A DNA stretch of 64,000 nucleotides, taken from Mobula hypostoma (Eukaryota). The stretch's first letter is position 1; each line of letters opens with the position of its first letter. Shown piece by piece: positions 3,370 to 63,525 of this stretch. The position numbers and the translations under genes are program-made. The notes beneath the pieces were generated by a model, which ran no database searches, was not told the origin of the DNA, and was given only the letters and a program-made list of their open reading frames with translations. The DNA is taken from assembly GCF_963921235.1 (NCBI RefSeq), contig NC_086109.1, positions 12,462,001-12,526,000 of the forward strand. The letters are read 5' to 3'.

Positions 3370-3417
3370 TCACTTTACCTTATGGACCAGTCTGTGAGGA
3401 TCTGATTCATTGTGTCT
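3370..3417 (-). CDS. Receptor gene B/C, terminal exon: short cytoplasmic tail RHNESDPHRLVHKVK*, no ITIM
   Basis: Acceptor ttgccttttacag| at 3418-3419, phase 0, matching the TM exon. Stop TGA at 3370-3372; the same AAG-TGA ending is present in the paralog at 42411-42461. Confidence 0.75.
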   Translation of the reverse strand, partial: RHNESDPHRLVHKVK

Positions 3418-3665
3418 CTGTAAAAGGCAAAGGTCAAATCATCAGATTCATTGACACTGGGAACTCTGCTTTAGAGTTGTGTCTGGAGTCCAATATATTC
3501 ACATCAAGCATTCTGCACACATACAGTGTGTCAACATCTTGACAATCTCATCTGCAGATAGCTTTGGATTGACCATTGGATAAGGAAAATGAAATGTGTT
3601 TAAATGTCTTTCCTCAAATGATGAGTATGTTTGAAAGCAAATTCCACTGATGTCCATAAACCTAC

Positions 3666-3756
3666 CTTAATTTGTCTTGTGAACCATGAGACTGAAATAG
3701 TGCAGGTCAGCAGCAGAGCGAAGAGCAGCCAACGACCAACCTTCCATATCATGAAA
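3666..3756 (-). CDS. Receptor gene B/C, transmembrane exon FMIWKVGRWLLFALLLTCTISVSWFTRQIK (basic K/R at the N-terminal end of the TM)
   Basis: 91 nt between acceptor cccctttgcag| and donor |gtaggt; phase 2 to 0; hydrophobic. A paralogous 91-nt exon lies at 42717-42807. Confidence 0.85.
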
Positions 3757-4061
3757 CTGCAAAGGGGAAGAGATACAGAACTGATGAGACAAAACGAGAT
3801 GGCTTTGTATTTGAAACATTAACCTTCTGTTCCCTCTGTAACATTTGTGGTGTGGAGTGAGGTAAATAAAGAGAGTCAGAGGAGTTCAGCTAGAAGGCTA
3901 CACTAGTATTGACTGAACAGCAGGATTCGGGAGGGTTAACAACCTGTGATCGTCAGTAACAGACCTAATCACTGTGACTTGGTCATGTACAAATGAGTTC
4001 TCTGAATTAAGAAGTCGTAGGTGAAAATGGATTTAGGAAAAATAATGAAGTGTAGAGGTGC

Positions 4062-4101
4062 CTTTATGATACTGAAATGTCACTGGAGAAAGTGGACACA
4101 G
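4062..4101 (-). pseudogene. Relic Ser/Thr stalk exon (AVSTFSSDISVS*) with an in-frame TAA
   Basis: Acceptor ttccttacag|CTGTGTCCACTT matches 43096-43135. 40 nt if a GC donor is used; phase 1 to 2; TAA at 4064-4066. Confidence 0.45.
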
Positions 4102-6883: not shown

Positions 6884-6929
6884 CTTACAGTTGATACTGT
6901 CGTAAATGTTTCACATGAATATTCACGTC
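6884..6929 (-). CDS. Receptor gene B/C, stalk exon (G)REYSCETFTTVSTV(S)
   Basis: Acceptor tctttccttgcctcaacag| and donor AAG|gtaaac; 46 nt; phase 1 to 2, which bridges the C2 exon (ends phase 1) and the TM exon (starts phase 2). Confidence 0.72.
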
Positions 6930-7334
6930 CTGTTGAGGCAAGGAAAGATAATTCAGTCTCATGTGCTTTGCAAATGCAGCCAAGCAAGAGTACATGGTTG
7001 ACAGGTGGAAACTCTTTCCTTGAATAAAGGGTTGCTTGGTTACATGGAGGTCAGTAATTTCTGTTTCCTGTGCAAATGCGAACACCCATGTTCCTGGGGA
7101 AGTTATGGGGCTTGGATCGTCGGGATCACAAACTCTATTTAATTGGAAGTGAAAGTTCCAGCCAGGCAAATGACAACTACCAGCTCTGGGAGATCTGTTG
7201 TTGGGGTCGCAACATTCACCAGAGGGATGAATACATCTCTGCACTGAGTGTATGTGGAGATATTGGACCAAGTTCAGTTGTTGATACGACAGGGTAATGC
7301 TTCTTTTCTCAATGAAAAGACAACTCCTGGTATA

Positions 7335-8460: not shown

Positions 8461-9672
8461 TGTTATGGAGTGCTCCTGCAGGACTGGACCCAGGTGCGGA
8501 GGAATGGCAGGATGCCCAGGATGAGACGGAACCAAGAGGTAAGATGTTGGAATCAGAACCTCGGAGGAGCGACTGAGTAAAACCATGAGGTAATTCATCC
8601 TCTCTGACACAATGGCCACCCCAAGGCCCCAACTGATTATCCTCTTTAAATAATCATAGACTGAGGGAATTATGAGCCAGCCACAATTAACTTGACAAAG
8701 TCAAACCGAAAACACAAGGGCTTATCAACTCTAGTTAAGGCACTGATTAGCAAACACAGCTGCTTAAACACACCAGAAGCTGAATGCACTACAGCACGCA
8801 GCAGGGCTCAAGACAGTTCCTCCCCTCCTAAGGCTGGCACCTGACTGACTAGGGAGCTCTCGAGGCAGGTCTGAAAACACAAGGGGGACCTGGAGCTTGA
8901 GGCAGCGCTGGAGAATCCAGAACAGATTCGGAGCTTTCGAGGCAGGTCTGAAAAAACACGACAGAACGGGAGCTCAAGGCATAGCATTTGACTTGGAACC
9001 ATAGCACTTGACTTGGATGCACAGCATGTGACTTGGAAACACAGCGTTTAACTCAGGAAAAAAGCCTAAGATGGGAGACCTTATGAAACTTGTTGACCCA
9101 GATAGCTGTGGAAAAAATCTTGAACACAGACCGGAGAAGCTCAGAACCTCCATTGGGTCCATACAATGGGAGTCATTCTGTCATGGTGCACACCCTGAGG
9201 GCTGGATCCAGGTGTAGAGAAACAGCAGGATCCCCAGGATGAGATGCAAGGTAAGACAAGGGAATCAAAGCCTCAGAAAAGCGATGAGTAACACCATGAG
9301 GTAATTCATCCTCTCTGACATAATGACCACCCCTGAGGCAGCAACTGAGATTCCTCCCTAAATAATCATAGACTGAGGAAAACATAAGCCAGCCACAATT
9401 AACCTGACAAGTCAAACCGAAAACACAAGGGCTTATCAAGACCCTGATGAAGGGTGTCGGCCTGAAATGTCGACTGCACCTCTTCCTAGAGATGCTGCTT
9501 GGCCTGCTGCGTTCACCAGCAACTTTGATGTGTGTTGCTTGAATTTCCAGCATCTGTAGAATTCCTGTTGTTTAGGGCTTATCAACTCTAGTTAAGGCAC
9601 TGATTAGCAAATACAGCTGCTTAAACACCCCAGAAGGTCAGCGCTCTATGGAAAGCTACAAGGCACATGACA
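8461..9672 (-). mobile_element. Miniature non-autonomous LTR retroelement (TRIM-like)
   Basis: Direct repeats 8461-8815 and 9179-9672 with TGT...ACA ends; 5-bp TSD AAGAA at 8456-8460 and 9673-9677; minus-strand polypurine tract AGGAGGGGAGGAAC abutting the 3' LTR; internal region only 363 bp with an MDPME... start remnant. Confidence 0.8.
9440..9573 (+). mobile_element. Penelope-derived short retroelement inserted in the LTR; hammerhead-like core CTGATGA-AGGGTGTCGGCCT-GAAAT-GTC
   Basis: Flanked by a 12-bp TSD AGGGCTTATCAA (9428-9439 and 9574-9585); absent from the sister LTR. Confidence 0.75.
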
Positions 9673-11396: not shown

Positions 11397-11708
11397 CAGT
11401 GCCAGTGATTTGAATCACAAAACTGCAATTGCCTTCCCTGTTGTAGATGGACACGTTCACTATTTCACTAGACTTTGCTCCACAAGTATTCGAGGCTGTG
11501 CAGTAATATTGATGGTGTTGGTAGTTGAAGGATTGACAATGTAGATCCAGTTTACTGGTGACAGAGATCACAGATGATGTGTTTTCATACCATGTGTATT
11601 GAATGGGAAGGGATCCCTGGACAGACTCACAGGACACTGACACGGAGCCCTCAACACACGAGACATTTGCAGGAGACAGAAATTGAAGCACAGGAACAGA
11701 CACCGGTT
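11397..11708 (-). CDS. Receptor gene B/C, C2-type Ig domain exon (membrane-proximal)
   Basis: 312 nt, phase 1-1, acceptor tctttcccacag| and donor |gtaagt. VSCESVQGSLPIQYTWY...YYCTASN motif; open frame. Confidence 0.9.
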
Positions 11709-13059: not shown

Positions 13060-13380
13060 CATCAGACACGTGTAGATGCACATCAAACACTGGATGATTG
13101 CCAGATGTTGTAATTCCACATCTGTAAAGTCCTGTATCTTGAGAGACGAGATTCTCCATAGTAACAGTAAATATTCCCTGGGTTGTGTTATCTCTGATTG
13201 CCATTTTTCCATACTGCTCATTTGTCCCATTTGTATCCACTAACGATGTGCATTGGTGATCCCACATGCGGCACCAATACTTTGTGTGTGAACGGTACAT
13301 TGGTGCATAGTGACAATCAATTGTGACCGTTCTTCCCACAACTCCTCTTACTTTATCTTCTGCCCATAAAGCACCTGAAA
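13060..13380 (-). CDS. Receptor gene B/C, V-type Ig domain exon, CD300/pIgR-like
   Basis: 321 nt, phase 1-1, donor GATG|gtaggt. TIDCHY...KYWCRMWDHQC...DTGLYRC, with the extra C-X6-C pair typical of CD300/pIgR V domains. Confidence 0.92.
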
Positions 13381-18388: not shown

Positions 18389-18709
18389 TGGTGCCATTAA
18401 TTCTTGTCACATATCCGCAGATCTCTCTGCTGTTGAAGATTGTCACATTTAGCATTCCGCTGGATTTTATTCCAAGCCTATTTGAGGCTTTGCAGTAATA
18501 TTGATGGGCTTGGAGGTCTAAGGATTGACAAGGTAGAACCAGTTCATTGGTGTCTGAGATCATTTGATCCCCAGATGAGGTTTGTTCATACCATGAGTAC
18601 TGAATGGGAAGGGATCCCTGGAGAGATTCACAGGACACTAACACGGAGCCACCGAGATGGGAGACATTTGCTGGTGACAGATTTCGAAGCACAGGGACAG
18701 ACACAGTTT
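18389..18709 (-). CDS. Receptor gene B/C, C2-type Ig domain exon
   Basis: 321 nt, phase 1-1, acceptor ccttcccacag| and donor |gtaagt. VSCESLQGSLPIQYSWY...YYCKASN; paralog of 11397-11708. Confidence 0.9.
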
Positions 18710-18769: not shown

Positions 18770-19319
18770 TGCCACTGTATTAGGTACACCTGTTCACCTG
18801 CTTGTTAATGCAAATATCTAATTAGTCTATCATCTGGCAGCAACACAGTACATAAAAACATGTAGACATACTCAAAAGATTCAGCTGTTGTTTAGACCAA
18901 ACATCAGAATGGGGAAGAAATGTGATCTTAGTGACTTTGACCATAGAATGATAGCTGGTGCCAGACAGGGAGGTTTGAGTATCTCAGGAACTGTTGAATT
19001 CCAGGAATATTCATACATAGTCTGCAGACTTTACAGAGAATGGTGCAAAAAGCAAAAAGTATCCAGTGAGCAGCAATTCTGTGAGCAAAAATGACTGGTC
19101 AATGGGAGAGGTCAGAGGAGAATGGCCAGGTAGTTTCAGGCTGACAGAAAGATGACAGAAATTCAAATAAACATGTGCTATGACAGTTATGCAGAGGAGC
19201 ATCTGGGCACACAACCCACAGTTAAGCTTAAAGGTAATGGGCCACAGCAGCAGAAGACCATGAACATATTCCTTGGCCAATTTATTAGTTATAGGAGGTA
19301 CCTAATAAAGTGGCCACTG
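18770..19319 (+). mobile_element. Internally deleted Tc1-like element (transposase N-terminus only)
   Basis: MGKKCDLSDFDHRMIAGARQGGLSIS...; terminal repeat GTACCTAATAAAGTGGCCACTG ends at 19319. Related partial copies lie near 20620-21072, 32790-33230, 40345-40425 and 56660-57575. Confidence 0.8.
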
Positions 19320-19409
19320 AGTATTTAAAGACAGCAGCTTGTGAGATATCTGTCACATGTTTGATGGCTATCAGGAAAAAACTACCCGCTGTATAAAGGG
19401 AAACATTTC

Positions 19410-20340
19410 AGAATCAGAATCAGGTTTATTATCACTGGCATGTGTTGTGAAATTTGTTAACTTAGCAGAAGCATCTAGATGCAATACATAATATAGAAGA
19501 AGAAGGAAAAAAATAATAAAATAATAATAAGTAAGTAAATCAATTACAGTACACATATTGAATAGGTTAAAAATTGTGCATCAAACAGAAATAATATATA
19601 TTAAAAAAGTGTTGTAGTGTTTATGGGTTCCATGTCTATTTAGGAATCAGGTGGCAGAGGGGAAGAAGCTGTACCTGAATCGCTGATGTGTGCCTTCAGG
19701 CTTCTGTACTTCCTACCTGATGGTAACAGTGAGAAAAGGGCATGCCCTGGATGCTGGAGGTCCTTAATATTGGATGCTGCCTTTCTGAGACACCACTGCT
19801 TGAAGATGTCCTGGGTATTTGTAAGCTAGTATCCAAGATGGAGACAACTAAATTTACAGCCCTCTGCAGTTTCTTTCGGTCCTGTGCCATAGCCCGCCCC
19901 CCGCCCCCCCGATACCAGACAGTGATGCAACCTGTCAGAATGCTCTCCACTGTACATCTATAGAAGTTTTTGAGTGTATATGTTGACGTACCAAATCTCT
20001 TCAAACTCCTAATGAAGTATAGTCGCTGTCTTGCCTTCTTTATAATTGCATCAATATGTTGGGACCAGGTTAGGTATCTGAGATCTTCACACCCAGGATC
20101 CTGAAATTGCTCACTCTCTCCACTTCTGATCCCTCTTTGAGGATTGGTATGTGTTCTTGAAGTCCACAATCCCTTCCTGAATTCCGCAATCAGCTCTTTC
20201 GTCTTACTGACGTCATATGCAAGTTCGTTGGTGCGAAACCACTCCACTCGTTGGCAAATCTCACTCCCATATGCCTTCTCATCTCCATCTGAGATTCTAC
20301 CAACAATGGCTGTATCATCAGCAAAATTATAGATGGTATT
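19410..20340 (-). mobile_element. Rex1/Babar-like LINE, RT C-terminal fragment with 3' UTR
   Basis: FADDTAIVGRISDGDE...SKTKELI...ARQRLYFIRSLKRFG...FYRCTVESILTGCITVWY; ends in a GATTCT-type tail near 19410. Confidence 0.85.
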
Positions 20341-20618
20341 TGACAATGATATTAATACAGAGATAGTGAGGAATGGACAGTGTCTGGACAAAGATCTTTT
20401 AAACTGTGCTGAGGCAGAGTGGGAGGAGAAGGAGAAGGAGATTGTTGTTCTTCAGACATGTCAGGAGTTGGACATTTCTCCATTCAACAGGCTTCACCCT
20501 GGGATTAGCACATCATTGCTCTCCAAGAGTTTTCATGTTCTGACCTTTCCCAGAGGAAACATGGATTTATTTCATTGAAGGCACAAAGTTACTCACTGAG
20601 AAACCTACCATCAGATAC
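20340..20618 (-). pseudogene. Remnant of a deleted V exon (last about 11 nt plus donor) and its downstream intron
   Basis: GAGAAACCTACCATCAGATAC near 20598-20618 and the adjacent about 260 bp are paralogous to 21185-21460, but the V coding body is replaced by Tc1-element sequence. Confidence 0.65.
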
Positions 20619-21449
20619 AGTGCCTATGGTCAAGAGATTCAGTTGTTGTTCAGGACAAATATCAGATGGGGAGGAAATGAGATTTTAGTGACTTTGACCA
20701 TGCAATGATAGTTGGAGTCAGTCGGGGCGGTTTGAATACCTCAGAACCTGTTGATGTCCTGGGACTTGCATGTTTAACAGTCTTCAGAATGGTGTGAAAA
20801 ACAAGAAATATCTAGTGAGCAGCAATTCCGTGAACAATAATGCCTTGATAATGAGAGAGGTCAGAGGAGAATGGCCAGACTGGTTCATGCTGACAGAAAG
20901 ATGACAGAAATTCAAATAACCTCATTTTATGACAGTGGTGTGCAGAAGAGCATCTGAACACACAAGACATCAAAGCTTGAAGTGAATGAATCACAGCAGC
21001 AGAAGACCATGAACAGACGCTCAGTGGCCACTTTATTTGGTATAAGAGTTACCAAATGAGGTGCCCACTGAGTGTTTAAAGGCAGCAACTTGTGAGATAC
21101 CCATCACATGTTTAGTGGCTTTCAGGCGGAAATGAAATTGCGACTGGGTTCAGTGACCTGCCATAGAGAGGGAAACATGTGGCACTGATATTAATGCAGA
21201 AATAGTGAGAGATGGACAGAGTCAGGACAAAGGTCCTGTAATCTGTGCAGAGGCTGAGCAGGAGGAGGAGGAGATTGCTGTTCTTCAAACACATCCACAA
21301 GATGGGCATTTCTCCACTGTACAAGCTTAACCCTGGGATCAGCACATCGTCACTCCCCAGGACATCTAATACACTGACCCTTCCCAGGGGAAACATGGAT
21401 AAGACATTTATTTTACTGAAGGCACAAAGTCAATCACTGAGAAACCTAC

Positions 21450-21770
21450 CATCAGATACTTGTAAATGTACATTAAATATCGGATCATGACCTGGTGTTG
21501 AAATCCCACAGCTGTACCATCCTGTATCTCCAGAGTGAAGATCCTCCACAGTAACAGTAAATATTTCCCATTCTGGGTTATCTGTGATTGATGCTCGTCC
21601 ACTCCGTCTGTGTTGCCCATTTGTTTCCATTAAAACTGAACATTGATGAGTCCATCCATGACACCAATACTTTGTGCGTGAGTGGTACTTTGCTTCATAG
21701 TGACAATGGATTGTAATCGCTCTTCCCACAACTCCTCTTACATATTTCTCTGCCCACAATGCACCTGAAA
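21450..21770 (-). CDS. Receptor gene B/C, N-terminal V-type Ig domain exon, CD300/pIgR-like
   Basis: 321 nt, phase 1-1. VSGALWAEKYVRGVVGRAITIHCHY...KYWCHGWTHQC...DTGWYSC; open frame with canonical splice sites. Confidence 0.92.
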
Positions 21771-23132: not shown

Positions 23133-23172
23133 CAGGTAGAAAACCAATCAGAAGAATCAAAGTCCACATCAT
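23133..23172 (-). CDS. Receptor gene B/C, leader (signal peptide) exon MMWTLILLIGFLP
   Basis: ATGATG...CCTG|gtgagt, phase 1. Joined to the V exon it gives MMWTLILLIGFLPVSGALWA, a complete signal peptide. Confidence 0.85.
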
Positions 23173-24433: not shown

Positions 24434-27306
24434 GGAGCATTCGTAATAAGGTGGATGAATTGAAAGTGCAGATTGTTATTAATGATTATGATATAGTTGG
24501 GATCACAGAGACATGGCTCCAGGGTGACCAGGGATGGGAGCTCAACGTTCAGGGATATTCAATATTCAGGAGGGATAGACATGAAGGAAGGTGAGGTGGG
24601 GTGGCGTTGCTGGTTAAAGAAGAGATTAATGCAATAGAAAGGAAGGACATAAGCCGGGAAGATGTGGAATCGATATGGGTAGAGCTGCGTAACACTAAGG
24701 GGCAGAAGACGCTGGTGGGAGTTGTGTACAGGCCACCTAACAGTAGTAGTGAGGTCGGAGATGGTATTAAACAGGAAATTAGAAATGTGTGCAATAAAGG
24801 AACAGCAGTTATAATGGGTGACTTCAATCTACATGTAGACTGGGTGAACCAAATTGGTAAAGGTGCTGAAGAAGAGGATTTCTTGGAATGTATGCGGGAT
24901 GATTTTTTGAACCAACATGTCGAGGAACCGACTAGAGAGCAGGCTATTCTGGACTGGGTTTTGAGCAATGAGGAAAGGTTAATTAGCGATCTTGTCGTGA
25001 GAGGCCCCTTGGGTAAGAGTGACCATAATATGGTGGAATTCTTCATTAATATGGAGAGTGACATAGTTAATTCAGAAACAAAGGTTCTGAACTTAAAGAG
25101 GGGTAACTTTGAAGGTATGAGACGTGAATTAGCTAAGATAGACTGGCAAATGACACTTAAAGGATTGACGGTGGATATGCAATGGCAAGCATTTAAAGGT
25201 TGCATGGATGAACTACAACAATTGTTCATCCCAGTTTGGCAAAAGAATAAATCAAGGAAGGTAGTGCACCCGTGGCTGACAAGAGAAATTAGGGATAGTA
25301 TCAATTCCAAAGAAGTAGCATACAAATTAGCCAGAGAAAGTGGCTCACCTGAGGACTGGGAGAAATTCAGAGTTCAGCAGAGGAGGACAAAGGGCTTAAT
25401 TAGGAAGGGGAAAAAAGATTATGAGAGAAAACTGGCAGAGAACATAAAAACGGACTGTAAAAGCTTTTATAGATATGTAAAAAGGAAAAGACTGGTAAAG
25501 ACAAATGTAGGTCCCCTGCAGACAGAAACAGGTGAATTGATTATGGGGAGCAAGGACATGGCAGACCAATTGAATAATTACTTTGGTTCTGTCTTCACTA
25601 AGGAGGACATAAATAATCTTCCAGAAATAGTAAGGAACAGAGGGTCCAGTGAGATGGAGGAACTGAGTGAAATACATGTTAGTAGGGAAGTGGTGTTAGG
25701 TAAATTGAAGGGATTGAAGGCAGATAAATCCCCAGGGCCAGATGGTCTGCATCCTAGAGTGCTTAAGGAAGTAGCCCAAGAAATAGTGGATGCATTAGTG
25801 ATAATTTTTCAAAACTCGTTAGATTCTGGACTAGTTCCTGAGGATTGGAGGGTGGCTAATGTAACCCCACTTTTTAAAAAAGGAGGGAGAGAGAAACCGG
25901 GGAATTATAGACCGGTTAGCCTAACGTCGGTGGTGGGGAAACTGCTGGAGTCAGTTATCAAGGATGTGATAACAGCACATTTGGAAAGCGGTGAAATGAT
26001 CGGACAAAGTCAGCATGGATTTGTGAAAGGAAAATCATGTCTGATGAATCTCATAGAATTTTTTGAGGATGTAACTAGTAGAGTGGATAGGGGAGAACCA
26101 GTGGATGTGGTATATTTGGATTTTCAAAAGGCTTTTGACAAGGTCCCACACAGGAGATTAGTGTGCAAACTTAAAGCACACGGTATTGGGGGTAAGGTAT
26201 TGGTGTGGGTGGAGAATTGGTTAGCAGACAGGAAGCAAAGAGTGGGAATAAACGGGACCTTTTCAGAATGGCAGGCAGTGACTAGTGGGGTACCGCAAGG
26301 CTCAGTGCTGGGACCCCAGTTGTTTACAATATACATTAATGACTTGGACGAGGGAATTAAATGCAGCATCTCCAAGTTTGCGGATGACACGAAGCTGGGT
26401 GGCAGTGTTAGCAGTGAGGAGGATGCTAAGAGGATGCAGGGTGACTTGGATAGGTTGGGTGAGTGGGCAAATTCATGGCAGATGCAATTTAATGTGGATA
26501 AATGTGAAGTTATCCACTTTGGTGGCAAAAATAGGAAAACAGATTATTATCTGAATGGTGGCCGATTAGGAAAAGGGGAGGTGCAACGAGACCTGGGTGT
26601 CATTATACACCAGTCATTGAAAGTGGGCATGCAGGTACAGCAGGCGGTGAAAAAGGCGAATGGTATGCTGGCATTTATAGCGAGAGGATTCGAGTACAGG
26701 AGCAGGGAGGTACTACTGCAGTTGTACAAGGCCTTGGTGAGACCACACCTGGAGTATTGTGTGCAGTTTTGGTCCCCTAATCTGAGGAAAGACATCTTTG
26801 CCATAGAGGGAGTACAAAGAAGGTTCACCAGATTGATTCCTGGGATGGCAGGACTTTCATATGAAGAAAGGCTGGATGAACTGGGCTTGTACTCGTTGGA
26901 ATTTAGAAGATTGAGGGGGGATCTGATTGAAACGTATAAGATCCTAAAGGGATTGGACAGGCTAGATGCAGGAAGATTGTTCCTGACGTTGGGGAAGTCC
27001 AGAACGAGGGGTCACAGTTTGAGGATAGAGGGGAAGCCTTTTAGGACCGAGATTAGGAAAAACTTCTTCACACAGAGAGTGGTGAATCTGTGGAATTCTC
27101 TGCCACAGCAAACTGTTGAGGCCAGTTCACTGGCTATGTTTAAGAGGGAGTTAGATATGGCCCTTGTGGCTACAGGGGTCAGGGGGTATGGAGGGAAGGC
27201 TGGGGCGGGGTTCTGAGTTGGATGATCAGCCATGATCATAATAAATGGCGGTGCAGGCTCGAAGGGCCGAATGGCCTACTCCTGCACCTATTTTCTATGT
27301 TTCTAT
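24434..27306 (+). mobile_element. Young CR1-clade LINE (APE endonuclease plus RT), slightly 5'-truncated
   Basis: 871-aa open frame 24601-27216 with GDFN, YLDFQKAFDKV, GVPQGSVLGP and FADD motifs; in-frame TGA at 24592-24594; (TTTCTATG)n tail. Confidence 0.96.
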
Positions 27307-30300
27307 ATCTATAGATGCTGTCTGCTGAGTTCCTCCACCATTTTGGGTGTGTCGGTTTTGATTTCATTGTGGTGCGAGGGTTGAGGTGATCCAAGAATCT
27401 GGCTGATTTATATTCTCCTGAATTTTTGTTGGCTGACTTTGCAATTGCTTATAAATACTTAACTCCACATTGTATGCAAATAGATAAATGATAAAATAAT
27501 TCCGTATACATGTAGAGTGGTTTTTGTTAAATATTTTTTCGGGGGAAACAGTGCAATATATTAGCTGTGAATGTACATCTGCTTAAATTCTGCACCTTGT
27601 GTAGTATGAGTGATGACTCTATGTATCAGCCACTGCTGTCATTTGTGTAATGTTCACCCTCAGCAAAGGATAAGAGAAGATAAATCTTTTTTTATCCCAA
27701 AGGAAATTATTGTTGCCCAGTCAGACATATACTGTATACTTTAAAATGCAAAAAATAAGCATTGATGTGGGTAGAACTTCTGTTTTATTTAATTGTCTTA
27801 ACAAACAGAATATGAGAAGTACCAATGGATGCTACACACTGACAGATGTTCTGGACTCTTCCTGCATTGTCCTGTCACTTCTTGGAAAACTTCTCAACAA
27901 TTATGGTTCCTTACGTAGTGGTTGACGTAGTAGTAGTATGGTTCAATATGCTGATGTGAACAAGTGCAGAGATATAAAACATCTTCAGTGAAGCATTTTT
28001 GTTTCAGCAACTAGATCACTGAACAACAATAATAATTTGGTGAAGAAAAGTGAAAAGGCCATTTAGCCACTGTGTTTAAACCTAATCCCACTCATGTACA
28101 TAATGGTGGGATTGTACAACAGTTTTTCATTCGTTGTTGAGAAGTTATCCAAGAACTGAAGCTTCATAAGGTATTAGTCAGATGACACTGGGAAAATAGT
28201 GAACAAACTTGGGTCCTTTATCCATTGAAGGATATGCTATAATTGGAGAGGGGCCAGAGGAGGTTCATGAGAATTATCCCAAGAATGAAAGGGTTAACAT
28301 ATAAAAATTGTTTGATGGCTCTGGGCCTGTACTTGCTGGAGTTCAGAATGATGGGGAAATTTCACTGAAACCTCTTGAATAGTGAAGCGCTTAGAACCCC
28401 AATGGAGTGTATGTGGAGAGGATGTTTCCAATAGTGGGGGAGTCTCAGACCAGAGGGTGTAGCCTCAGAATACAAGGATGTCCCTTTAGGAATTTTTTAG
28501 CCAGGTGGTGATGAATCTGTGGAATTCACTGCCACTGGCAGCTATGGAAGCCATGTAATTGGGTATGTTTAACACAGAGCTTAAAGTAGTTTTTGATTGG
28601 TAAGGTTGTCAAAGGTTACGATGCGAATGTGGTTGAAGGGAATAATAAAGCTGTCAGTATTGAATGGTGGAACAGAGGGAATGGCTGAACGGCCTACTTC
28701 TGTTCCCATGGCTTTTTGTATTATGGTCTTCCGGTCTTGTGGTCTTATGTGATGGAGCAGTCCAGGAAGAGGATGGAACAATTTATTTTCATGAGGCATC
28801 CATTGGAACTTCCCTAAGTTCAGTTTTATAAGTCAAGTAAAAGGGCACAAAAGTTCTAACCACATTCTTTGAGAATTGCTTTATGATGTCCTGATTCAGA
28901 ATCAGAATCGAATTTATTTACACTGCCATCTGATGCAAAATTTCTTGTTTTGCAGCAGAATAAAGAAACAAAAGCAAGTTCCTTCCCTCAGACCATTAAC
29001 AAGCTCAGGTTTAACAGGCCCAGAATCACAAGTGGGACCACTGCTTCTGGAGTTATCTGCAGCTAAACAACACCCAACAGATAACCCTGAGCTGAAGAGA
29101 TCATGAGCTCCAAACAGAATCTGGTGTTACCGCTTCACATCCTCACATAGCAGGTGAAAGATATTTTGTGATATTCCTCCTGGTGAGTAGGCCATTTCAA
29201 AGTTCAAAATTCAAATTAAATTTATCAACGTGCAGCACGATGTCACCATAAACTACCCTGATTATAAGATAATAATGCAGTTCACCTTCTCTCATTTTCA
29301 AGTCCCTTTGTTGTACGTTCATGGGTCACAGATCAGTACTGAGAAAAGTTACACCTTCTATTTGCAGATACATACCCTGACGACCAATGCAAGTTGCAAT
29401 AATTTGCCCCTCACTCATTTTATTCAGCACCCAACTTTAATTTCCATTGCTCATTCTCCTTTTGGACCTTTGTACAGTGACTGGAAATGTTCATGCTAGT
29501 GTCTCTTTCTCATTCCATTTCTTCAAAATGCATTTTGAAAGGTCCGTAATCATGCACCTGATCAAAGTTCAAAATGTACATGGTAAATGTATTATCAAAT
29601 TACATTTACATCACCATATGCTACCCAGAGATTCATTTTCTTGTAGGCATTCAAAGTAGAACAAAGAAATACAACAGAATCAATGAAAAGCAACACTACC
29701 TCTTGCATCTCCCCTAATCTTCCCTCCACTCAGCATTAATGGACATTCTCTGGTATTGGTCATTGTCACCATGAGAAAGAGGAGCTGTCTGTCCACTCAG
29801 TCTATGCCGTATACACTCCTTCTACACCTCTCTACCAAGTTATCTCTCACCTTCCTTTGCTCCAAAGAGAAGATCACTGACTCACTCAACTTTTACTTTT
29901 CCTCATAAGACATGTTCTCTGACCCAAGCAGCATCTTGTTAAACCTCTTCTGCACCTTCCCTAAAGCTTCCATAACCTTCCTATAATGAGGCAATCAGAA
30001 CTGAACACAATACTCCAAGTGTGATGTAACCGGAGTTCTGTAGAGCGATAACATTACCTTGCCGCTCTTGAATTGAATTCTCTTGACCAGTGAATTCCAA
30101 CACCTCATACACCTTCTTTTCCACACTTTCAACCTGCACAGCAACTTTGAAGAATGTTACGGACTTGGAGACCAATAGCCATCTGTTCCTCCACATTGGT
30201 CAGAATCCTACCATTAACTTTGTAATCTGCCTTCAAGTTCGATCATCCAAAGTGCATCACATCACATTTTTCTGTGTTAAACTCCATCTACCACTTCTCC

Positions 30301-32114: not shown

Positions 32115-32152
32115 ATGTGGATTTCAATTCTTCTAATTTAGTTTCCTACCCA
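32115..32152 (+). pseudogene. Orphan leader exon, inverted and frameshifted (ancestral MWISILLISFLP)
   Basis: ATGTGGATTTCAATTCTTCTAATTTAGTTTCCTACCCA|gtgagtgacaacc is paralogous to 23133-23172, with a 1-nt insertion that creates TAG at 32139-32141. Confidence 0.75.
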
Positions 32153-42410: not shown

Positions 42411-42461
42411 TCACTTTAACTCCTGGACCACCAGGCTGAAAGGATCAGATTCATCACGTCT
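42411..42461 (-). pseudogene. Gene A terminal exon, short tail RRDESDPFSLVVQELK*
   Basis: Acceptor ttgccttttgcag|; paralog of 3370-3417 with the same stop position. Confidence 0.7.
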
Positions 42462-42716: not shown

Positions 42717-42807
42717 CTTAGTTTCCCTTGTGAACCACATGACTGAACTCGTGCCGATCATCAGGAGAGCGAAGAGCAGCCAACGACCCACCTTCCATGT
42801 CATGAAA
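42717..42807 (-). pseudogene. Gene A transmembrane exon FMTWKVGRWLLFALLMIGTSSVMWFTRETK
   Basis: 91 nt, canonical splice sites, open frame; WKVGRWLLFALL is identical to the 3.7-kb copy. Confidence 0.8.
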
Positions 42808-43592: not shown

Positions 43593-43912
43593 CATCAGAT
43601 ACTTGTAGATGTACATTAATCATCAAATTGGGACCTGTTGTTCTAGTTCCACAGCTGTACCATCCTGTATCTCCAGAGCGAAGATCCACCATAGTAACAG
43701 TAACTGTTCTCCATTCCATGTTATCTGTGATTGACAGTCTTCCTCTCCATCTGTGATGCCCATTTGTTTCCACTAAAACTGAACAACTGACGGTCCATCC
43801 ATGGCACCAATACGTTGTGCACGAGTGGTGCATTGCTTCATAGTGACATTCGGTTGTGATCTCTCTTCCCACAACTCCTCTTACGTATTTTCTGCCCACA
43901 ATGTAACTGAAA
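43593..43912 (-). pseudogene. Gene A V-type Ig exon with a 1-nt deletion and a GC donor
   Basis: 320 nt versus 321 in both paralogs. GCAGAAAATAC versus GCAGAGAAATAT gives TAA soon after the exon start; donor is GATG|gcaggt. No leader exon was found upstream. Confidence 0.8.
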
Positions 43913-44279
43913 CTGAGGAGGGCATTTTCAGATTTGAGGGGAAAGGAACAAATTAATGTAAAAAATATTTTTGAACTTGACAGTAAAATCAGGTCCAGGT
44001 CACGTCCAGCATGTTGACCATGACACCATAGCCAATGATTTTGGTGGGAAGTGCAGTCAGGGCTGTTACTGTGTCAGCTGTGTCAGTGCTCTCTCCCCTG
44101 TGTCAGTACATTGTGGGTTTACTTCCCACTCCAGAGTCCTGAGCAGAAACCCAGGGCTGATCTTCCAGTGCAGTACTGAGGGAGAGCAGCAGTGTTGAAA
44201 TTTCAGTTACCTCAGATTATGATCAGCCTTTCAAAAGTACACAACGATGCCAGATATTTCATTTGGGAGGCTTCCAGAC

Positions 44280-44280
<1 letters not shown>

Positions 44281-44326
<46 letters not shown>
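44281..44326. repeat. (TG)n microsatellite
   Basis: Direct reading. Confidence 0.95.
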
Positions 44327-47504: not shown

Positions 47505-50463
47505 TATAGATAATGACAAGAAAGAACATAATTGTATAAGGGCTAAGAGAGTTGTAAAAGAGCTCCTGAAGGCTTTGTGTGTCAATGCAAGGAGCATTTG
47601 TAATAAGGTGGATGAATTGAAAGTGCAGATTGTTATTAATGATTATGATATAGTTGAGATCACAGAGACATGGCTCCAGGGTGACCAAGGATGGGAGCTC
47701 AACGTTCAGGGATATTCAATATTCAGGAGGGATAGACATGAAGGAAGGTGAGGTGGGGTGGCGTTGCTGGTTAAAGAAGAGATTAACGCAATAGAAAGGA
47801 AGGACATAAGCCGGGAAGATGTGGAATCGATATGGGTAGAGCTGCGTAACACTAAGGGGCAGAAGACGCTGGTGGGAGTTGTGTACAGGCCACCTAACAG
47901 TAGTAGTGAGGTCGGAGATGGTATTAAACAGGAAATTAGAAATGTGTGCAATAAAGGAACAGCAGTTATAATGGGTGACTTCAATCTACATGTAGATTGG
48001 GTGAACCAAATTGGTAAAGGTGCTGAGGAAGAGGATTTCTTGGAATGTATGCGGGATGGTTTTTTGAACCAACATGTCGAGGAACCAACCAGAGAGCAGG
48101 CTATTCTGGACTGGGTTTTGTGCAATGAGGAAGGGTTAATTAGCAATCTTGTCGTGAGAGGCCCCTTGGGTAAGACTAACCATAATATGGTGGAATTCTT
48201 CATTAAGATGGAGAGTGACATAGTTAATTCAGAAACAAAGGTTCTGAACTTAAAGAGGGGTAACTTTGAAGGTATGAGACGTGAATTAGCTAAGATAGAC
48301 TGGCAAATGACACAAAGGATTGACGGTGGATATGCAATGGCAAGCATTTAAAGGTTGCATGGATGAACTACAACAATTGTTTATCCCAGTTTGGCAAAAG
48401 AATAAATCAAGGAAGGTAGTGCACCCGTGGCTGATAAGAGAAATTAGGGATAGTATCAATTCCAAAGAAGAAGCATACAAATTAGCCAGAGAAAGTGGCT
48501 CACCTGAGGACTGGGAGAAATTCAGAGTTCAGCAGAGGAGGACAAAGGGCTTAATTAGGAAGGGGAAAAAAGATTATGAGAGAAAAGTGGCAGGGAACAT
48601 AAAAACTGACTGTAAAAGCTTTTATAGATATGTAAAAAGGAAAAGACTGGTAAAGATAAATGTAGGTCCCCTACAGACAGAAACAAGTGAATTGATTATG
48701 GGGAGCAAGGACATGGCAGACCAATTGAATAATTACTTTGGTTCTGTCTTCACTAAGGAGGACATAAATAATCTTCCAGAAATAGTAGGGGACAGAGGGT
48801 CCAGTGAGATGGAGGAACTGAGCGAAATACTTGTTAGTAGGGAAGTGGTGTTAGGTAATTTGAAGGGATTGAAGGCAGATAAATCCCCAGGGCCAGATGG
48901 TCTGCATCCTAGAGTGCTTAAGGAAGTAGCCCAAGAAATAGTGGATGCATTAGTGATAATTTTTCAAAACTCGTTAGATTCTGGACTAGTTCCTGAGGAT
49001 TGGAGGGTGGCTAATGTAACCCCACTTTTTAAAAAAGGAGGGAGAGAGAAACCGGGGAATTATAGACTGGTTAGCCTAACGTCAGTGGTGGGGAAACTGC
49101 TGGAGTCAGTTATCAAAGATGTGATAACAGCACATTTGGAAAGCGGTGAAATCATCGGACAAAGTCAGCATGGATTTGTGAAAGGAAAATCATGTCTGAT
49201 GAATCTCATTGAATTTTTTGAGGATGTAACTATAGTAGAGTGGATGGGGAGAACCAGTGGATGTGGTATATTTGGATTTTCAAAAGGCTTTTGACAAGGT
49301 CCCACACAGGAGATTAGTGTGCAAACTTAAAGCATATGGTATTGGGGGTAAGGTATTGATGTGGCTGGAGAATTGGTTAGCAGACAGGAAGCAAAGAGTG
49401 GGAATAAATGGGACCTTTTCAGAATGGCAGGCGGTGACTAGTGGGGTACTGCAAGGCTCAGTGCTGGGACCCCAGTTCTTTACAATATATATTAATGACT
49501 TGGATGAGGGAATTAAATGCAGTATCTCCCAGTTTGCGGATGACACGAAGCTGGGTGGCAGTGTTAGCTGTGAGGAGGATGCTAAGAGGATGCAGAGTGA
49601 CTTGGATAGGTTGGGTGAGTGGGCAAGTTCATGGCAGATGCAATTTAATGTGGATAAATGTGAAGTTATCCACTTTGGTGGCAAAAATAGGAAAACAGAT
49701 TGTTATCTGAATGGTGGCCGATTAGGAAAAGGGGAGGTGCAAAGAGACCTGGGTGTCATTATACGCCAGTCATTGAAAGTGGGCATGCAGGTACAGCAGG
49801 CGGTGAAAAAGGCGAATGGTATGCTGGCATTTATAGCGAGAGGATTCGAGTACAGCAGCAGGGAAGTACTACTGTAGTTGTACAAGGCCTTGGTGAGACC
49901 ACACCTGGAGTATTGTGTGCAGTTTTGGTCCACTAATCTGAGGAAAGACATCCTTGCCATAGAGGGAGTACAAAGAAGGTTCACCAGATTGATTCCTGGG
50001 ATGGCAGGACTTTCATATGAAGAAAGACTGGATGAACTGGGCTTGTACTCGTTGGAATTTAGGAGATTGAGGGGGGATCTGATTGAAACGTATAAAATCC
50101 TAAAGGGATTGGACAGGCTAGATGCAGGAAGATTGTTCCCGATGTTGGGGAAGTCCAGAACAAGGGGTCACAGTTGGAGGATAAAGGGGATGCCTTTTAG
50201 GACCAAGATTAGGAAAAACTTCTTCACACAGAGAGTGGTGAATCTGTGGAATTCTCTGCCACAGGAAACAGTTGAGGCCAGTTCATTGGCTATATTTAAG
50301 AGGGAGTTAGATATGGCCCTTGTGGCTACGGGGATCAGGGGGTATGGAGGGAAGGCTGGGGCGGGGTTCTGAGTTGGATGATCAGCCATGATCATAATAA
50401 ATGGCGGTGCAGGCTCGAAGGGCCGAATGGCCTAGTCCTGCACCTATTTTCTATGTTTCTATG
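47505..50463 (+). mobile_element. Second young CR1 LINE, same subfamily as 24434-27306, with frameshifts
   Basis: Near-identical by eye to the first copy. TGA at 47749-47751, frameshifts near 48315 and 49235, TAG near 49875; same tail. Confidence 0.95.

Positions 50464-52708: not shown

Positions 52709-52711
<3 letters not shown>

Positions 52712-52745
<34 letters not shown>
52712..52745. repeat. (TA)n microsatellite
   Basis: Direct reading. Confidence 0.95.
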
Positions 52746-52748
<3 letters not shown>

Positions 52749-56620: not shown

Positions 56621-57622
56621 ACAAAGTAATTATGTGGATAGATTAAAGCAAAAGAGTTACACTCAGTGGCCACTCGATTGGGTACACCTGTTCACCTGCT
56701 CATAACGCAAATTCCTAATCAGCCAATCATGTGGTAGCAATGTGATGCATAAAAGCATGCAGATCTGGTCAAGAGGTTCAGTTGTTGTTCAGAACAAACA
56801 TTGGAATGGAGAAGAAATGTGACATAAGCGATTAACAAAAAAAAAGATCCAGTGAGTGGCAGTTCTATGCGTGCAAATGCCTTGTTACTGAGAGAGGTCA
56901 GAGGTGTTGGAAACCACTGCATTTTTAAAGTAATTCTTTCTATAAGATCTGTACTTTTTAAAAAACTCACGTATTTTTCACCGTACGTGCTGGTTTGTCC
57001 CCACTCATTGGCAGAAAGCGTTATAGCAGTTAAACTCATGGTTTATCATTTTTCTCATTTTTCACTGGGTAAGTATTAGCACATTACCCACGTGAGGTAA
57101 TTGTTTCAATTATGTATTGTATTAAGCCATTTTTTCTCTATAAGGAATTCTACTTAGCTATAAAAGTAATGGATTTTTCAGAGGTGCCATCTTTTTGCCT
57201 TTGTATTCTTTGCTGTTCATTTACCTCTTACTTTGTTACTCAGCTCTTAATTTATTTTGCTTTGTATTTGTCTGTTTGTTTGTAGTTTAAAATAAACAAT
57301 CATTAGAATTAAGATGCACATCCTTCCTGACTCCCAGAAGAACCAGAAGAAAGATTAAATAAAGAGGTCTTATAGAGGACAATGGCCAGACTGGTGGAAG
57401 GTGACAGTAATTTAAATAAACATGTGTTACAACAGTGGTGTGCAGAAGAACACTTTTCAATGCAGAACACACTGACATACATGCTTTTATGCATCTAGTT
57501 GCTGCTACATGATTGGCTGATTAGATATTTTCATTAACAAGCATCAACAGGTGTACCTAATAAAGTGGCCTCTGAGCGCAACTCTTCTGCCTTAATTCAT
57601 CCACATAATTACTTTATCAAGC

Positions 57623-57877
57623 TTATTCCAAGTCCTGTGGGGTACGAGGAGAGGAAGTTTTCCGTTTGGGCCTTGCGGGTTGGCTCTGAAATTTGATATC
57701 TGCGTAGGTGACACTGTCCTCATCAGTAAAAGAGTGCACTGCTCTTGATCTTCTTTTAAATTTCACGTTGGCATACACATTTCCATTTTCACTGTTAGCC
57801 AACTGGGCAGCTGCCTCATTGCTTCGAACATGGTGTAGATCTGCATAAACGATGTTTTCTTCCATCATGGCCAGTTC
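57623..57877 (-). CDS. Inhibitory receptor, terminal exon with ITIMs (IVYADL, VTYADI, and ITIM-like NVYANV)
   Basis: Acceptor tttatcatttcag|, phase 0; 84 codons then TAA at 57623-57625; three evenly spaced YA[DN][LVI] motifs. Confidence 0.88.
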   Translation of the reverse strand, partial: ELAMMEENIVYADLHHVRSNEAAAQLANSENGNVYANVKFKRRSRAVHSFTDEDSVTYADIKFQSQPARPKRKTSSPRTPQDLE

Positions 57878-59295: not shown

Positions 59296-59763
59296 ACTAA
59301 GCTACTGTGTCATCTCTAAAATTGTTATTCTTAATTGATCTGACCCATTTTTTCTGATTTCACATTGAGTTTGAGACTCAGAGGGAATATACAAAATGTA
59401 AACTGAAAAGCCATTGAACCCAAAGACAGATTTACACAATTAGATGCTCCATCTCTAACAGTAGAGAAAGGACCAATCTCACTCTTCACCATTCAGTAAT
59501 GATAATAAAGACTGGAGCCACTTAGATGAACAGTCAGGTAAAATATTATAGACGCACTTTAGGAAAAGCTGGATGAGCAGAACAGAAAGAGACAAATAAC
59601 CCGAAGGATAGGCCAATAGAAATCAATGAGGGGGGGTTCGGAGGTTTGTGTCTAATATAAATACTAGACTGGACTAGTGGGGATTAATGAGCTGTAAACT
59701 CCCATGTAATCCAATTTCTAAACATTCTGAAGCATTCAGACAATTTATACTTCAAGTCCGTAC

Positions 59764-59810
59764 CTGGGTATCCTTGTTGCCTTCTCCGTGAGTTGTGTTG
59801 TGCTTAGATT
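59764..59810 (-). CDS. Inhibitory receptor, cytoplasmic exon (E)SKHNTTHGEGNKDTQ
   Basis: Acceptor gtattttccag| and donor CAG|gtacgg; 47 nt; phase 1 to 0, bridging the TM and ITIM exons. Confidence 0.75.
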
Positions 59811-62669
59811 CTGGAAAATACAACATTACTGCTAAAAATTCCATGTCAGGAACAGACATAAAGATTTATTTATTTGTTTATTTAGTGATACAGCACACAG
59901 CAGGCAATTTCAGCCTTCCCCAGCAACCCTGGACAAACCAGATTAACCGTAACCTAATCATGGTGCAATTTCCATTGACCAATTCACCTACCCGGTACGT
60001 CTTTGGACTGTGGGAGGAAACTGGAGGACCCGGAGTGTATCCATGCATCCCACAGGGAGGACATACAGAGACTCCTTTCAGAACGGCACTGGAATTGAAC
60101 TGCAAACTTCAGAACGCCCCGAGCTGTAATAGCTTCACATGAACCACTAGGTTACCATGACACCCATACTGAATCTCAGAACCACGGGAACCCCAGCTGC
60201 AACACAGTAGTGATTCTTCACACAGAGCAAACCTCTGCTCTGGTTACTGCACAATGTTCAGAAAGGATCATATTGTTTTTTACCTCACCTTCTCTGCTAC
60301 TGAAAACTAACGTTTATCATCTTTGAACATTATGATAAAGGTTTTGGATTTGAAATTTTATCTTTCTTTTTATTGCTACAAATTCTGTCTGATTTACCTA
60401 CATTTCCTTCATTGTCTGTGTGTGTGTGCTTAGAGAATATTTCTCCTTCACAATATGATGGAGCAGATTACCTGACAATATTCACACTGTCCCATGAACA
60501 TCTCACTGATCTCCCCAGGACTCTGTGGTAGATTGTCCCTCAGGCAGGAGGAACAAACTGCCCAAAATAAAAATCATCTCATTTACCAACTGACCATAAA
60601 TCCTTTCAAATTCAACACCAAGATAAACAATTTCATATGGAAACCGAATGTCCCATCCTCAATGAACGGCTTTGATGGCCTTAGACTATTAGTGAATCTC
60701 ATGTTCCTTCCTGATATAGTTTGCTATTTTATTTCTAGCCACTAGATATCACTGCTTACTTGTAAGTTTACAGCAGTTTTTCATTCCTTACTACTGTGTT
60801 TCTAAGCAATTGACCTTTGACATTAGGTTGGCCTTTTTATAATCACTTGTGTACTTATTCGTTCATTTATCAGAAACAACTTGTGATGAGTCAAAGGAAT
60901 TTTAATCAACATTTGAATCCATCTCTTGTGAGAACAGCTAGAAGCATTGTCTTTTTACTCAGCTCCTTGTGCACTGCAATGCATTGGTGACCAATAAAAC
61001 CACCTTCAGACTACAACTACACCTGGACTGGAGTTTATCTATCTGTCTAGTCTAAAAAATAGGGAAAACCCTTGAGTGAGGGCAGAATAGTGCAAGTTGA
61101 ATTGTGAACAGATTTTATTTCCCAAATCCTGCTTCCCATTTTTTAATTAATGGTAGTTAACCATATAAAGAGAAATTTCAAAGGAAATCAAGAGCAGTAC
61201 ATTCTATTACTGATGAGGATAATGTCACCGATGCAGAAATCAAATCTCAAAGCCTGCCCATCTTTAAATCTTCATTTATCCTATTACTACCCACCTTTTG
61301 TCTCACACGTCATCATTCCTTATGAACTTATTCTGTCCTGTACTCCCTCAGAAACCCTCTCTTTTGTGCTTCCTTCCGTACTTCCTCTGCATCTCAAGAC
61401 TCGTTATTGCTCACATATTCCAGTTCTGATGCAAGACCATTGCCTTGAAGGATCAGCTGTTCCTCTCTCCATAGCTGCCATCTGACATGCTGTGCATCCC
61501 TAGCACTTTTCTGCCTATATCTCAGGGAATATTTAGGGAATTTCTCTTTGGAAAAGAATGCATTCCTTTGGTTCAGATCTTTGCAATAAACACTGGCTAG
61601 GGGATAATACTACGCTGAAAGTAATTGTCTGGTTTGTTGGGGAGAGAGAGAGAGAGAGAGGCCAGAAACTAAATCACGGGGAGCAGTTGAAATATTAGTT
61701 GTCTTAATTTTCAGCCAGTGAGTTGGAGGCTGCAGGGGCTTTATTTTCCAGTGTTCAACTCCATTTCCCCATCTAATAATAACACAGAGATGATCTCTGT
61801 ACTCACAGTTCTCTTCAATGGTTTACAAAGTCTACTTAAAGGACACAAGATTACTTATTTATTTATTTATACATCACAGAGTAAACCCTTCTGGCCCTTT
61901 GTGCCACGCTGACCCAGTGACCCCGACAAGCCTGATTAAACTTAATCCAATCATGGAACAATTTACAATGACCATATAACTCTCTTTGGAGAGTGGGAGG
62001 AAACTGGAGCACCCAGAGACACGTTCAATGGGCTGGACACAGAGACTCTGTACAGAACAACATCGGAATTGAACTCCGATCTCCAAAAAGCCCCAAGGAG
62101 TAACAGTGTGGTGCTAACCCCTACGCTACCGTGGTGCCCATCTCAGGATCATCTCAGCAAAGCAGACCCGTGACTTAATCTACAGCAACCAATGAGAGCA
62201 GGGTACTTTGTCCAGTGATATATAGTGAGTGGTAGATAGGTGAAAGATACACCTGATCTTTTTTTTTTGAGAATGACATGAGAGAATGAGTTTACACATA
62301 CATTGTCCAAATGATTGCTTTTAATTTGGAAGTTGTACTGAGGAACAGCTTATGGAATACACCTTCAAATACAACAGCTAATTCCCCAAAACTGAGTACA
62401 ACAGTGAGACCACCTAAATCTTTCTTCAACCCAGCCTCTTGGTTCTCTGCCATTCCACACCTGAGGTGAGATTCCATCACCTGATGTTTCAGGAATAATG
62501 GAGTCACCAGGTTCAGTGGAAGCAACACCATTTTATCATGTGTTGTAAACCAACAAATTGGCACTCTAATCCTGGCTTTTTGTTGACGGCAACGAAATCA
62601 AGTTCTTTAAGGTTCAGCTGCTAGTTATCATATTCATCATGAAATAATTAAAGGAAAAAAGAAACCTAC

Positions 62670-62761
62670 CCCTGTTTTTTCTCTTCAGGTAGCAAAGTAG
62701 ACAAATGACAAGTAGTATGAGAAGAGTTCCAACGACACTGAGCACAATTATGTAAGTAGGC
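62670..62761 (-). CDS. Inhibitory receptor, transmembrane exon PTYIIVLSVVGTLLILLVICLLCYLKRKNR
   Basis: Acceptor attctttaccacag| and donor |gtaggt; 92 nt; phase 2 to 1; uncharged TM followed by a basic stop-transfer segment. Confidence 0.88.
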
Positions 62762-63446
62762 CTGTGGTAAAGAATAGGAAAGGGTCAGTCCTGGTTTGAA
62801 ACTTATTCTTGGCCATTTGTAAAGTCTGACATTTACACAGCATTTTTCATGCATTCAGGATGTCTGCAGATCAGAAAATGAACATTAGACACTGTTGACA
62901 GTGTGGGAAATTGCAATAGCCGATCTGCTCACAGCAAGGTCTCACAAGTAGAAATGTGACCACGACCAATGATAGCGATTTGGTTAAAGAGTAACTATTG
63001 TCCGGGCTATTTGGGAACCCTCACATGTTCTTTTACAAACATTTCATTGGAACTGTTACATTAAAGAATTGATTGGTGGCTTCTTCTCTGACAGACAGAG
63101 TTGCTGACCATGTAGCCGAACCTCTTCTTTGAATGGTTTCCATGGTTTTCTTTGTTTTGCGGCTGTCTGGACCCTTGTTTGGCTTGGACGAGTCAGGCTG
63201 AAGGGCCTGTTGTTCTAATATACAACAATGACTTTAGTACTCAGAATATTTAGGGTAAGAAGATTATCTTTGATCTCAGGCTTGACACCTGTACAAGAAA
63301 ATCAGTTTCCAACACATCATTTCATTGAAGTTAATCATGTCAAATGTTTTTAATACCAGTTAAAGAGAAACAGATTTCTCTCCCAACTGGCTCTATTTGG
63401 AAGGAGTAGCAGTGAAACCAGCCGTAGAGAGAAACTTATACTTTAC

Positions 63447-63525
63447 ATTTTATCTGATTTAGATTCTTCCCCTTGTGTAGTTGTCGTAGATTCTGTCACA
63501 GTATTTTCACAGAAATGGATTGGCC
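63447..63525 (-). CDS. Inhibitory receptor, stalk exon (G)PIHFCENTVTESTTTTQGEESKSDK(M)
   Basis: Acceptor gattttcttttaacag| and donor |gtaaag; 79 nt; phase 1 to 2; Thr-rich. The Ig exons presumably lie beyond the window. Confidence 0.78.

Follow-up and report, generated by a model that had tools for sequence, protein, structure and literature searches.

Probable MDIR genes in the lesser devil ray

We found that a 64,000-nucleotide stretch of the lesser devil ray genome (Mobula hypostoma; RefSeq assembly GCF_963921235.1, contig NC_086109.1, positions 12,462,001 to 12,526,000), hereafter the window, very probably holds part of a gene cluster for MDIRs (modular domain immune-type receptors), a reading to which we give a probability of about 0.88. 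Its receptor exons, all on the minus strand, make up an intact gene (gene A, 23172-3370), a clearly dead copy of it that has lost the leader and four internal exons (gene B, ~43.9-42.4 kb) and the 3' half of another gene (gene C, 63525-57623), with genes A and C 34 kb apart and the exon borders of both showing canonical AG/GT sites and consistent phases (Table 1). The MDIR family was reportedly described in clearnose skate in 2006, by Cannon et al. in Immunogenetics (58:362).

When the first V-type immunoglobulin (Ig) exon of gene A (V1) was compared by HMMER with 1.8 billion representative proteins, it returned P0018 at 98% identity, which is XP_062921369.1, the M. hypostoma ‘Fc receptor-like protein 5 isoform X3’. 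The pieces of this protein match the window exactly, with only its final 31 residues encoded outside, and a second RefSeq entry, ‘pIgR-like isoform X2’ (P0154), inserts a second V exon (V2) between the two C2 exons (C2a and C2b); between them the two entries are 100% identical to the gene A exons. Because one gene is named FCRL5 in X3 and pIgR-like in X2, both names are automatic best hits for an MDIR gene. With P0018 as query, a word-indexed search retrieved 119 relatives, every one of them from a cartilaginous fish, including MDIR3, MDIR5 and MDIR2 of Rostroraja eglanteria (E-values of 2e-223, 3e-197 and 1e-89), and isoform X2 is colinear with MDIR5 and 62% identical to it across 502 aligned positions, among them the EYSCE stalk and the WKVGRWLLF transmembrane (TM) segment.

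A maximum-likelihood tree built from 64 V domains placed the window's V exons, all three, within a clade of MDIR-type V domains from chimaera, shark, skate and ray (support 99/95), in which a batoid sub-clade including MDIR2, MDIR3 and MDIR5 was supported at 96/92. V1 and the gene B V exon grouped with the first V domain of MDIR2; gene A V2 grouped with the V2 of inhibitory paralogues (100/100) and, in a broader grouping, with MDIR5 V2 and MDIR3 V3. Outside the clade were skate, catshark and electric ray pIgR-like proteins of the all-V type, the pIgR-like proteins of bony fish and caecilian, and rodent and lizard CD300, and a long-branched catfish pair misplaced within it was disregarded. A preliminary description of this DNA had suggested an MDIR-like family and had named homology search and V-domain phylogeny as ways to check it; both agree with that suggestion.

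MDIRs are multigene activating/inhibitory families resembling CD300, TREM, FCAR and pIgR (PMC3031540). The ray genes combine V and C2 domains in variable numbers (three or four Ig domains in the annotated isoforms and one to six in homologues), and genes A and C represent activating-type and inhibitory-type members of one multigene family.

Exon inventory of the window

A six-frame scan recovered three open V-like exons with the C...W...YxC pattern and exactly two WKVGRW sites, at 3746-3729 and 42797-42780, and the window in total has three V and two C2 exons. Further V or C2 exons were sought in 27.3-42.3 kb, in 50.4-57.6 kb and at the window ends, where only noise was found. In each of the three TM exons, an AG acceptor precedes a phase-2 start, the first base of the exon being the third of a split codon. 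The preliminary description had listed same-strand V exons with an extra C-x6-C pair, C2 exons, two WKVGRW exons, one uncharged TM exon leading to a tail with immunoreceptor tyrosine-based inhibitory motifs (ITIMs), and the shared phase 2, and all of these features are real. Its picture of the cluster needs trimming on three points: the ectodomain exons of the inhibitory gene lie outside the window, the second WKVGRW exon is that of pseudogene B, and the V and C2 exons are limited to three and two.

Domain mosaic and exon structure of gene A

All three V exons matched Pfam V-set above the cut-off (E-values of 2.5e-12 for V1, 1.5e-12 for V2 and 7e-07 for the gene B exon) and carry the extra cysteine pair YWC-x6-C, as CHGWTHQC, CRMWDHQC and CHGWTVSC, respectively. 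Compared by phmmer with solved structures in PDB, V1 matched pIgR (5e-48, summed), CD300/CMRF35 (1e-17), NKp44 (1e-7) and TREM2 (3e-5), with TIM and FcmuR also matched. The C2 exons gave Ig_2, Ig_3 and Ig_C17orf99 matches under the Pfam cut-offs, and their closest solved relatives are FCRL5 (E-value of 3.4e-37 for C2b, summed over 6 domains), then FCRL4 and CD22. Since the V domains score best with pIgR/CD300 and the C2 domains with FCRL5, FCRL4 and CD22, the gene A receptor is a mosaic of CD300/pIgR-type V and FCRL-type C2 domains. V1 and V2 are 61% identical, as are C2a and C2b, which together with the pseudogene and inverted fragments described below fits repeated duplication and decay.

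This mosaic bears on whether the genes could be orthologues of mammalian FCRL5 or another FCRL, as the RefSeq name of isoform X3, their C2 domains and the ITIM tails that the family uses might suggest. We consider this very improbable, given that domains 1 and 3 of gene A are V domains of the CD300/pIgR type, that isoform X2 of the same gene carries a pIgR-like name and that the closest characterised relatives are the skate MDIRs. To our knowledge, the ectodomains of FCRL proteins consist of C2-type domains and contain no CD300/pIgR-type V, and gene A lacks the C2-only ectodomain of the FCRL subtypes. Nor does it follow the CD300 plan of a single V and a stalk, having four Ig domains of which two are C2.

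As an MDIR gene, gene A comprises eight stop-free exons with canonical splice sites and Ig exons in phase 1-1, in the order leader-V-C2-V-C2-stalk-TM-tail; the eight-exon model of the preliminary description is correct and was already annotated in RefSeq. The junctions are based on these models and on homologues, the C2a-V2 junction (GT-I-SGALWAED) being identical in P0007 and P0010. All sampled words (100%) of the C2b exon were present in three presumed RNA runs from the same organism (X6, X9 and X10).

The 3' end of gene A can be read in two ways. Both M. hypostoma RefSeq isoforms splice from the tail exon to an exon outside the window that adds 31 residues, which we found in none of ~260 homologues. 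If the tail-exon donor is left unused, the frame continues through VK to a stop codon ending at 3370 and gives RHNESDPHRLVHKVK, with an ATTAAA signal, conserved between genes A and B, ~110 nt downstream of the stop. Short tails ending in this manner (...YKVK, ...QEVK, ...HELQ) are found in skate MDIR5 and in 15 of the 17 complete ray and skate homologues from outside M. hypostoma. Because MDIR5 and most homologues end so and the extra exon occurs in no other homologue, we take the short tail as the canonical product; the tails of about 15 residues noted in the preliminary description hold for gene A provided that the donor is read through.

Gene C and the pairing of signalling types

Only the 3' half of gene C lies within the window, as four intact exons that agree in phase and are followed by a polyA signal; an inhibitory receptor of Hemitrygon matches them at 60-87% identity. 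Its uncharged TM exon leads to a tail in which IVYADL and VTYADI, ~47 residues apart, fit the ITIM consensus (S/I/V/L)xYxx(I/V/L), and the middle motif, NVYANV, is only a YxxV. In one presumed RNA run (X1), 70% of the sampled words of the last exon and 3' untranslated region were present.

The relation between the two signalling types is best seen by comparing gene A with an ITIM-bearing M. hypostoma paralogue (P0195), which we take to be on the same chromosome. Isoform X2 of gene A and P0195 share 79% identity across their first 334 residues (leader, V1, C2a and V2, with V2 alone at 88%), after which no similarity remains. Near-identical ectodomains on what appear to be opposite signalling modules are the pattern of paired receptors, in agreement with the activating and inhibitory types proposed in the preliminary description. 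As a separate observation, residues 360-461 of P0195 (TM and ITIM tail) scored 28.8 bits with Pfam SIT (SHP2-interacting transmembrane adaptor), above its cut-off of 27.6 bits, which may be a motif-level resemblance only.

WKVGRW was present in 20 retrieved proteins, all from rays or skates by their source names, and the corresponding segment of shark members reads W(D/N/S)V(I/L)RW. The activating TM module is conserved as W-x-V-x-R-W; across the elasmobranchs sampled the Arg is the conserved charge, and the Lys was confined to rays and skates. Receptors that use FcR-gamma or CD3-zeta are known to have an Arg close to the outer end of the TM. Each of the two stalk exons has one membrane-proximal cysteine (EYSCE in gene A and IHFCE in gene C), which also occurs in skate MDIR2, MDIR3 and MDIR5 and in sharks (EYTCD/E); this conservation hints at disulfide-linked dimers.

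The gene A product is a type I membrane protein with the organization leader-V-C2-V(cassette)-C2-Cys stalk-TM-tail, with Lys and Arg at the outer end of its TM (WKVGRW) and a tail of ~15-20 residues that lacks signalling motifs. Judging from its motifs, the TM Arg would most likely pair with the TM Asp of an adaptor bearing an immunoreceptor tyrosine-based activation motif, for example FcR-gamma or DAP12, and the gene C ITIMs, once phosphorylated on tyrosine, would recruit SHP-type phosphatases. A-type and C-type receptors differ by an exchangeable stalk-TM-tail cassette with a phase-2 TM exon behind near-identical ectodomains. More tentatively, this phase-2 stalk-TM-tail might be an indivisible signalling cassette, with V and C2 exons freely skipped or shuffled and with loss of the stalk killing a copy (as in gene B), because only the stalk exon joins the phase 1-1 Ig exons in frame to the phase-2 TM exon. 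Under this doubtful extension, members of the family may have been killed repeatedly, and in a manner specific to this locus, by small inversions that flip single exons (a leader at 32.1 kb and an ITIM fragment at 61.2 kb).

Pseudogene B and decay in the cluster

Comparing the window with itself, we found 21.4-23.1 kb copied at 43.5-45.2 kb with 82-84% identity and 3.3-3.9 kb copied at 42.3-42.9 kb with 74% identity. The homology between genes B and A ends at 45219, before the expected leader position, and alignment and exon scan of the window found no copies of C2a, V2, C2b or the stalk at gene B. Its V exon has a 1-bp deletion 24 nt past the acceptor that leads to a stop in the acceptor frame, and the differences from gene A V1 are spread evenly across codon positions (20/17/15). 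The phase-1 donor of the V exon is moreover incompatible with the phase-2 acceptor of the TM exon. We also considered gene B as a working single-V gene of the CD300 kind, which is ruled out by the frameshift, the GC donor, the missing leader and stalk, and the phase 1/2 mismatch. A (CA/TG)n microsatellite lies at ~44230-44310 in the intron upstream of the V exon and appears as VCVCVC and THTHTH runs in translations.

Intact, pseudogenised and rearranged members adjoin one another here, which bears out the birth-and-death locus of the preliminary description. The MDIR family appears to evolve by duplication and decay, with gene B as a dead copy of gene A and inverted exon fragments nearby. That the whole region is a graveyard in which none of the three units yields a working receptor seems less probable still than FCRL orthology. 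Such a reading could draw on the clearly dead gene B, on the inverted exon fragments and the many pieces of long interspersed nuclear elements (LINEs) in the region, and on the lack of any annotated gene C protein in our searches, but gene A has its stop-free exons, canonical sites and annotated isoforms, presumed RNA contigs contain the gene A C2b exon fully, and the four in-window exons of gene C are unbroken, agree in phase and are followed by a polyA signal.

Several points nevertheless weigh against a cluster of working activating and inhibitory MDIR genes. The Ig exons of gene C lie beyond the window end, leaving the integrity of the whole gene unproven, and when its protein was sought with the C-terminal region of P0195, no M. 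hypostoma protein other than P0195 was found and none above 90% identity. The runs that match gene A and gene C exons are only guessed to be RNA, and adaptor binding and phosphatase recruitment by the two receptors are inferred from motifs only. The extra 31-residue exon of both gene A isoforms contains an ITIM-like SQYRGL, which if real would blur the ‘activating’ label. We regard SQYRGL as unlikely to be a genuine ITIM, given the absence of the exon from other homologues and the altered motif in the decayed copy near gene B.

Comparison with known receptor families

Among characterised receptors, clearnose skate MDIR5 (Rostroraja/Raja eglanteria) is closest in plan to gene A, with V-C2-V-C2, an EYSCE stalk, a WKVGRWLLF TM and a tail of ~15 residues that stops two residues beyond the same point. 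Gene A differs in coming from another species, in having V2 as an annotated cassette exon and in the lineage-specific 3' exon that the M. hypostoma isoforms add. The inhibitory MDIR2 and MDIR3 resemble gene C in their uncharged TM, KRK-type stop-transfer and several (I/V)xYxx(V/I/L) tail motifs; the number of Ig domains is two in MDIR2, five in MDIR3 and four in the ray genes, with gene C visible only as its 3' half. Mammalian CD300 (CMRF35-like) proteins share with the ray genes a V domain with an extra C-C' disulfide, activating members with a charged TM alongside inhibitory members with ITIMs, and genomic clustering, but they have a single V without C2, and the ray V clade is separate from that of tetrapod CD300. 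By similarity, the C2 domains of FCRL5, FCRL4 and CD22 are the best solved relatives of the ray C2 exons, although FCRL proteins lack a CD300-type V.

Like gene A, pIgR has several V domains per chain and is the best solved relative of its V domain (5e-48, summed), but it is built of V-type domains only, with a long sorting tail, and is a single-copy transport receptor rather than a paired signalling family. Least probable of all is a role of these genes as the true polymeric immunoglobulin receptor of the ray, serving transcytosis of polymeric Ig, despite the V-domain scores and the pIgR-like labels that NCBI gives to many homologues, since the V domains alternate with FCRL-like C2 domains, the tails are ~15-20 residues long or bear ITIMs, the TM holds Lys and Arg, the family is multigene with paired types, the tree places skate, shark and electric ray pIgR-like proteins of the all-V type outside the MDIR clade, and neither gene A nor gene C has a V-only ectodomain with a long sorting tail.

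With the MDIR reading retained, what was already known is the family itself (since 2006) and gene A, present in public annotation under automatic names; what is new is the exact exon map, the identification of the RefSeq entries as members of the MDIR family, the description of how the pseudogene is built and the stalk-TM phase logic. Since the paired logic of the family was also known from 2006 onward, no new question is raised. The map, which for a myliobatiform ray gives an activating MDIR gene, a pseudogene and the 3' end of an inhibitory gene to the base, should aid the annotation of elasmobranch immune genomes, and the W-x-V-x-R-W activating TM module is documented as common to rays, skates and sharks.

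Table 1. Receptor exons and exon fragments in the window, with positions counted from its first nucleotide; ‘matched coding’ marks the stretch matched by P0018, in which split-codon bases at exon ends are not counted
Feature	Position	Strand	Details
Gene A leader exon	23133..23172	-	MMWTLILLIGFLP; ATG; phase-1 donor GTGAGT; exact match to P0018/P0154 residues 1-13; matched coding 23172-23134
Gene A V1 exon	21450..21770	-	pIgR/CD300-type V-set, C-x6-C; 321 nt; phase 1-1; AG/GT; 100% identical to P0018; matched coding 21771-21451
Gene A C2a exon	18389..18709	-	FCRL-like C2; 321 nt; phase 1-1; splice sites present; 100% identical to P0018; matched coding 18710-18390
Gene A V2 exon (cassette)	13060..13380	-	321 nt; in RefSeq isoform X2, skipped in X3
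Gene A C2b exon	11397..11708	-	312 nt; 100% identical to P0018; best PDB match FCRL5; matched coding 11706-11395
Gene A stalk exon	6884..6929	-	GREYSCETFTTVSTV; membrane-proximal Cys; 46 nt; AG/GT; phase 1 to 2; exact match to P0018 residues 333-346; matched coding 6927-6886
Gene A TM exon	3666..3756	-	FMIWKVGRWLLFALLLTCTISVSWFTRQIK; starts in phase 2, ends in phase 0; matched coding 3758-3666
Gene A tail exon	3370..3417	-	RHNESDPHRLVHK, with read-through VK and stop; donor at 3378 used by isoform X3; matched coding 3417-3379; ATTAAA at 3263
Decayed copy of the extra 3' exon of the gene A isoforms	29427..29522	-	tblastn 59% identity over 32 residues; 2 stops
Pseudogene B V exon	43593..43912	-	320 nt versus 321; from DNA alignment with gene A V1; donor GT to GC
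Pseudogene B TM exon	42717..42807	-	FMTWKVGRWLLFALLMIGTSSVMWFTRETK; itself intact; contains WKVGRW
Pseudogene B tail exon	42411..42461	-	RRDESDPFSLVVQELK, then stop; donor GT to TT
Inverted pseudo-leader exon	32115..32150	+	MWISILLI, then stop (internal TAG); blastn 79% identity to gene A leader region; donor damaged
Inverted ITIM-exon fragment in gene C intron	61173..61253	+	tblastn 72-78% identity; Tyr to Asp (VTDAEI)
Gene C stalk exon	63447..63525	-	GPIHFCENTVTESTTTTQGEESKSDK; 79 nt; phase 1 to 2; splice sites; 82% identical to P0010 residues 440-467
Gene C TM exon (uncharged)	62670..62761	-	PTYIIVLSVVGTLLILLVICLLCYLKRKNR; starts in phase 2; splice sites; 87% identical to P0010 residues 468-497
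Gene C small cytoplasmic exon	59764..59810	-	SKHNTTHGEGNKDTQ; 47 nt; splice sites
Gene C terminal exon	57623..57877	-	IVYADL, NVYANV, VTYADI and stop; 81% identical to P0010 C-terminus (E-value of 9e-41); AATAAA at 57256

Mobile elements and repeats

The window is AT-rich vertebrate DNA (GC content of 0.37-0.48) with LINE and transposon remains throughout. Upstream of gene A, a LINE at 24595-27213 (+) has an uninterrupted open reading frame (ORF) of 873 residues with endonuclease and reverse transcriptase (Pfam RVT_1, 2e-33), and a copy upstream of pseudogene B at 47752-50369 (+) is 97% identical and broken into several ORFs. Because the flanking duplicated DNA is only ~83% identical, the pair represents either two young insertions or gene conversion.

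Within gene A, the C2b-stalk intron contains direct copies of ~350-500 nt (8461-8815 and 9179-9672; 75-94% identical in blocks), compatible with a small element of the long terminal repeat kind, and the V1-C2a intron has a direct repeat of ~500 nt (18872-19375 and 20630-21126; 79% identical). Between the latter two copies lies an ORF of 251 residues at 19699-20451 (-) with an ALKBH8_N-type match, which is probably part of a retroelement. A remnant of a Tc1/mariner-type transposase was found at 88-561 (+), with DDE_3 and HTH_Tnp_Tc3_2 matches both under the Pfam cut-off.

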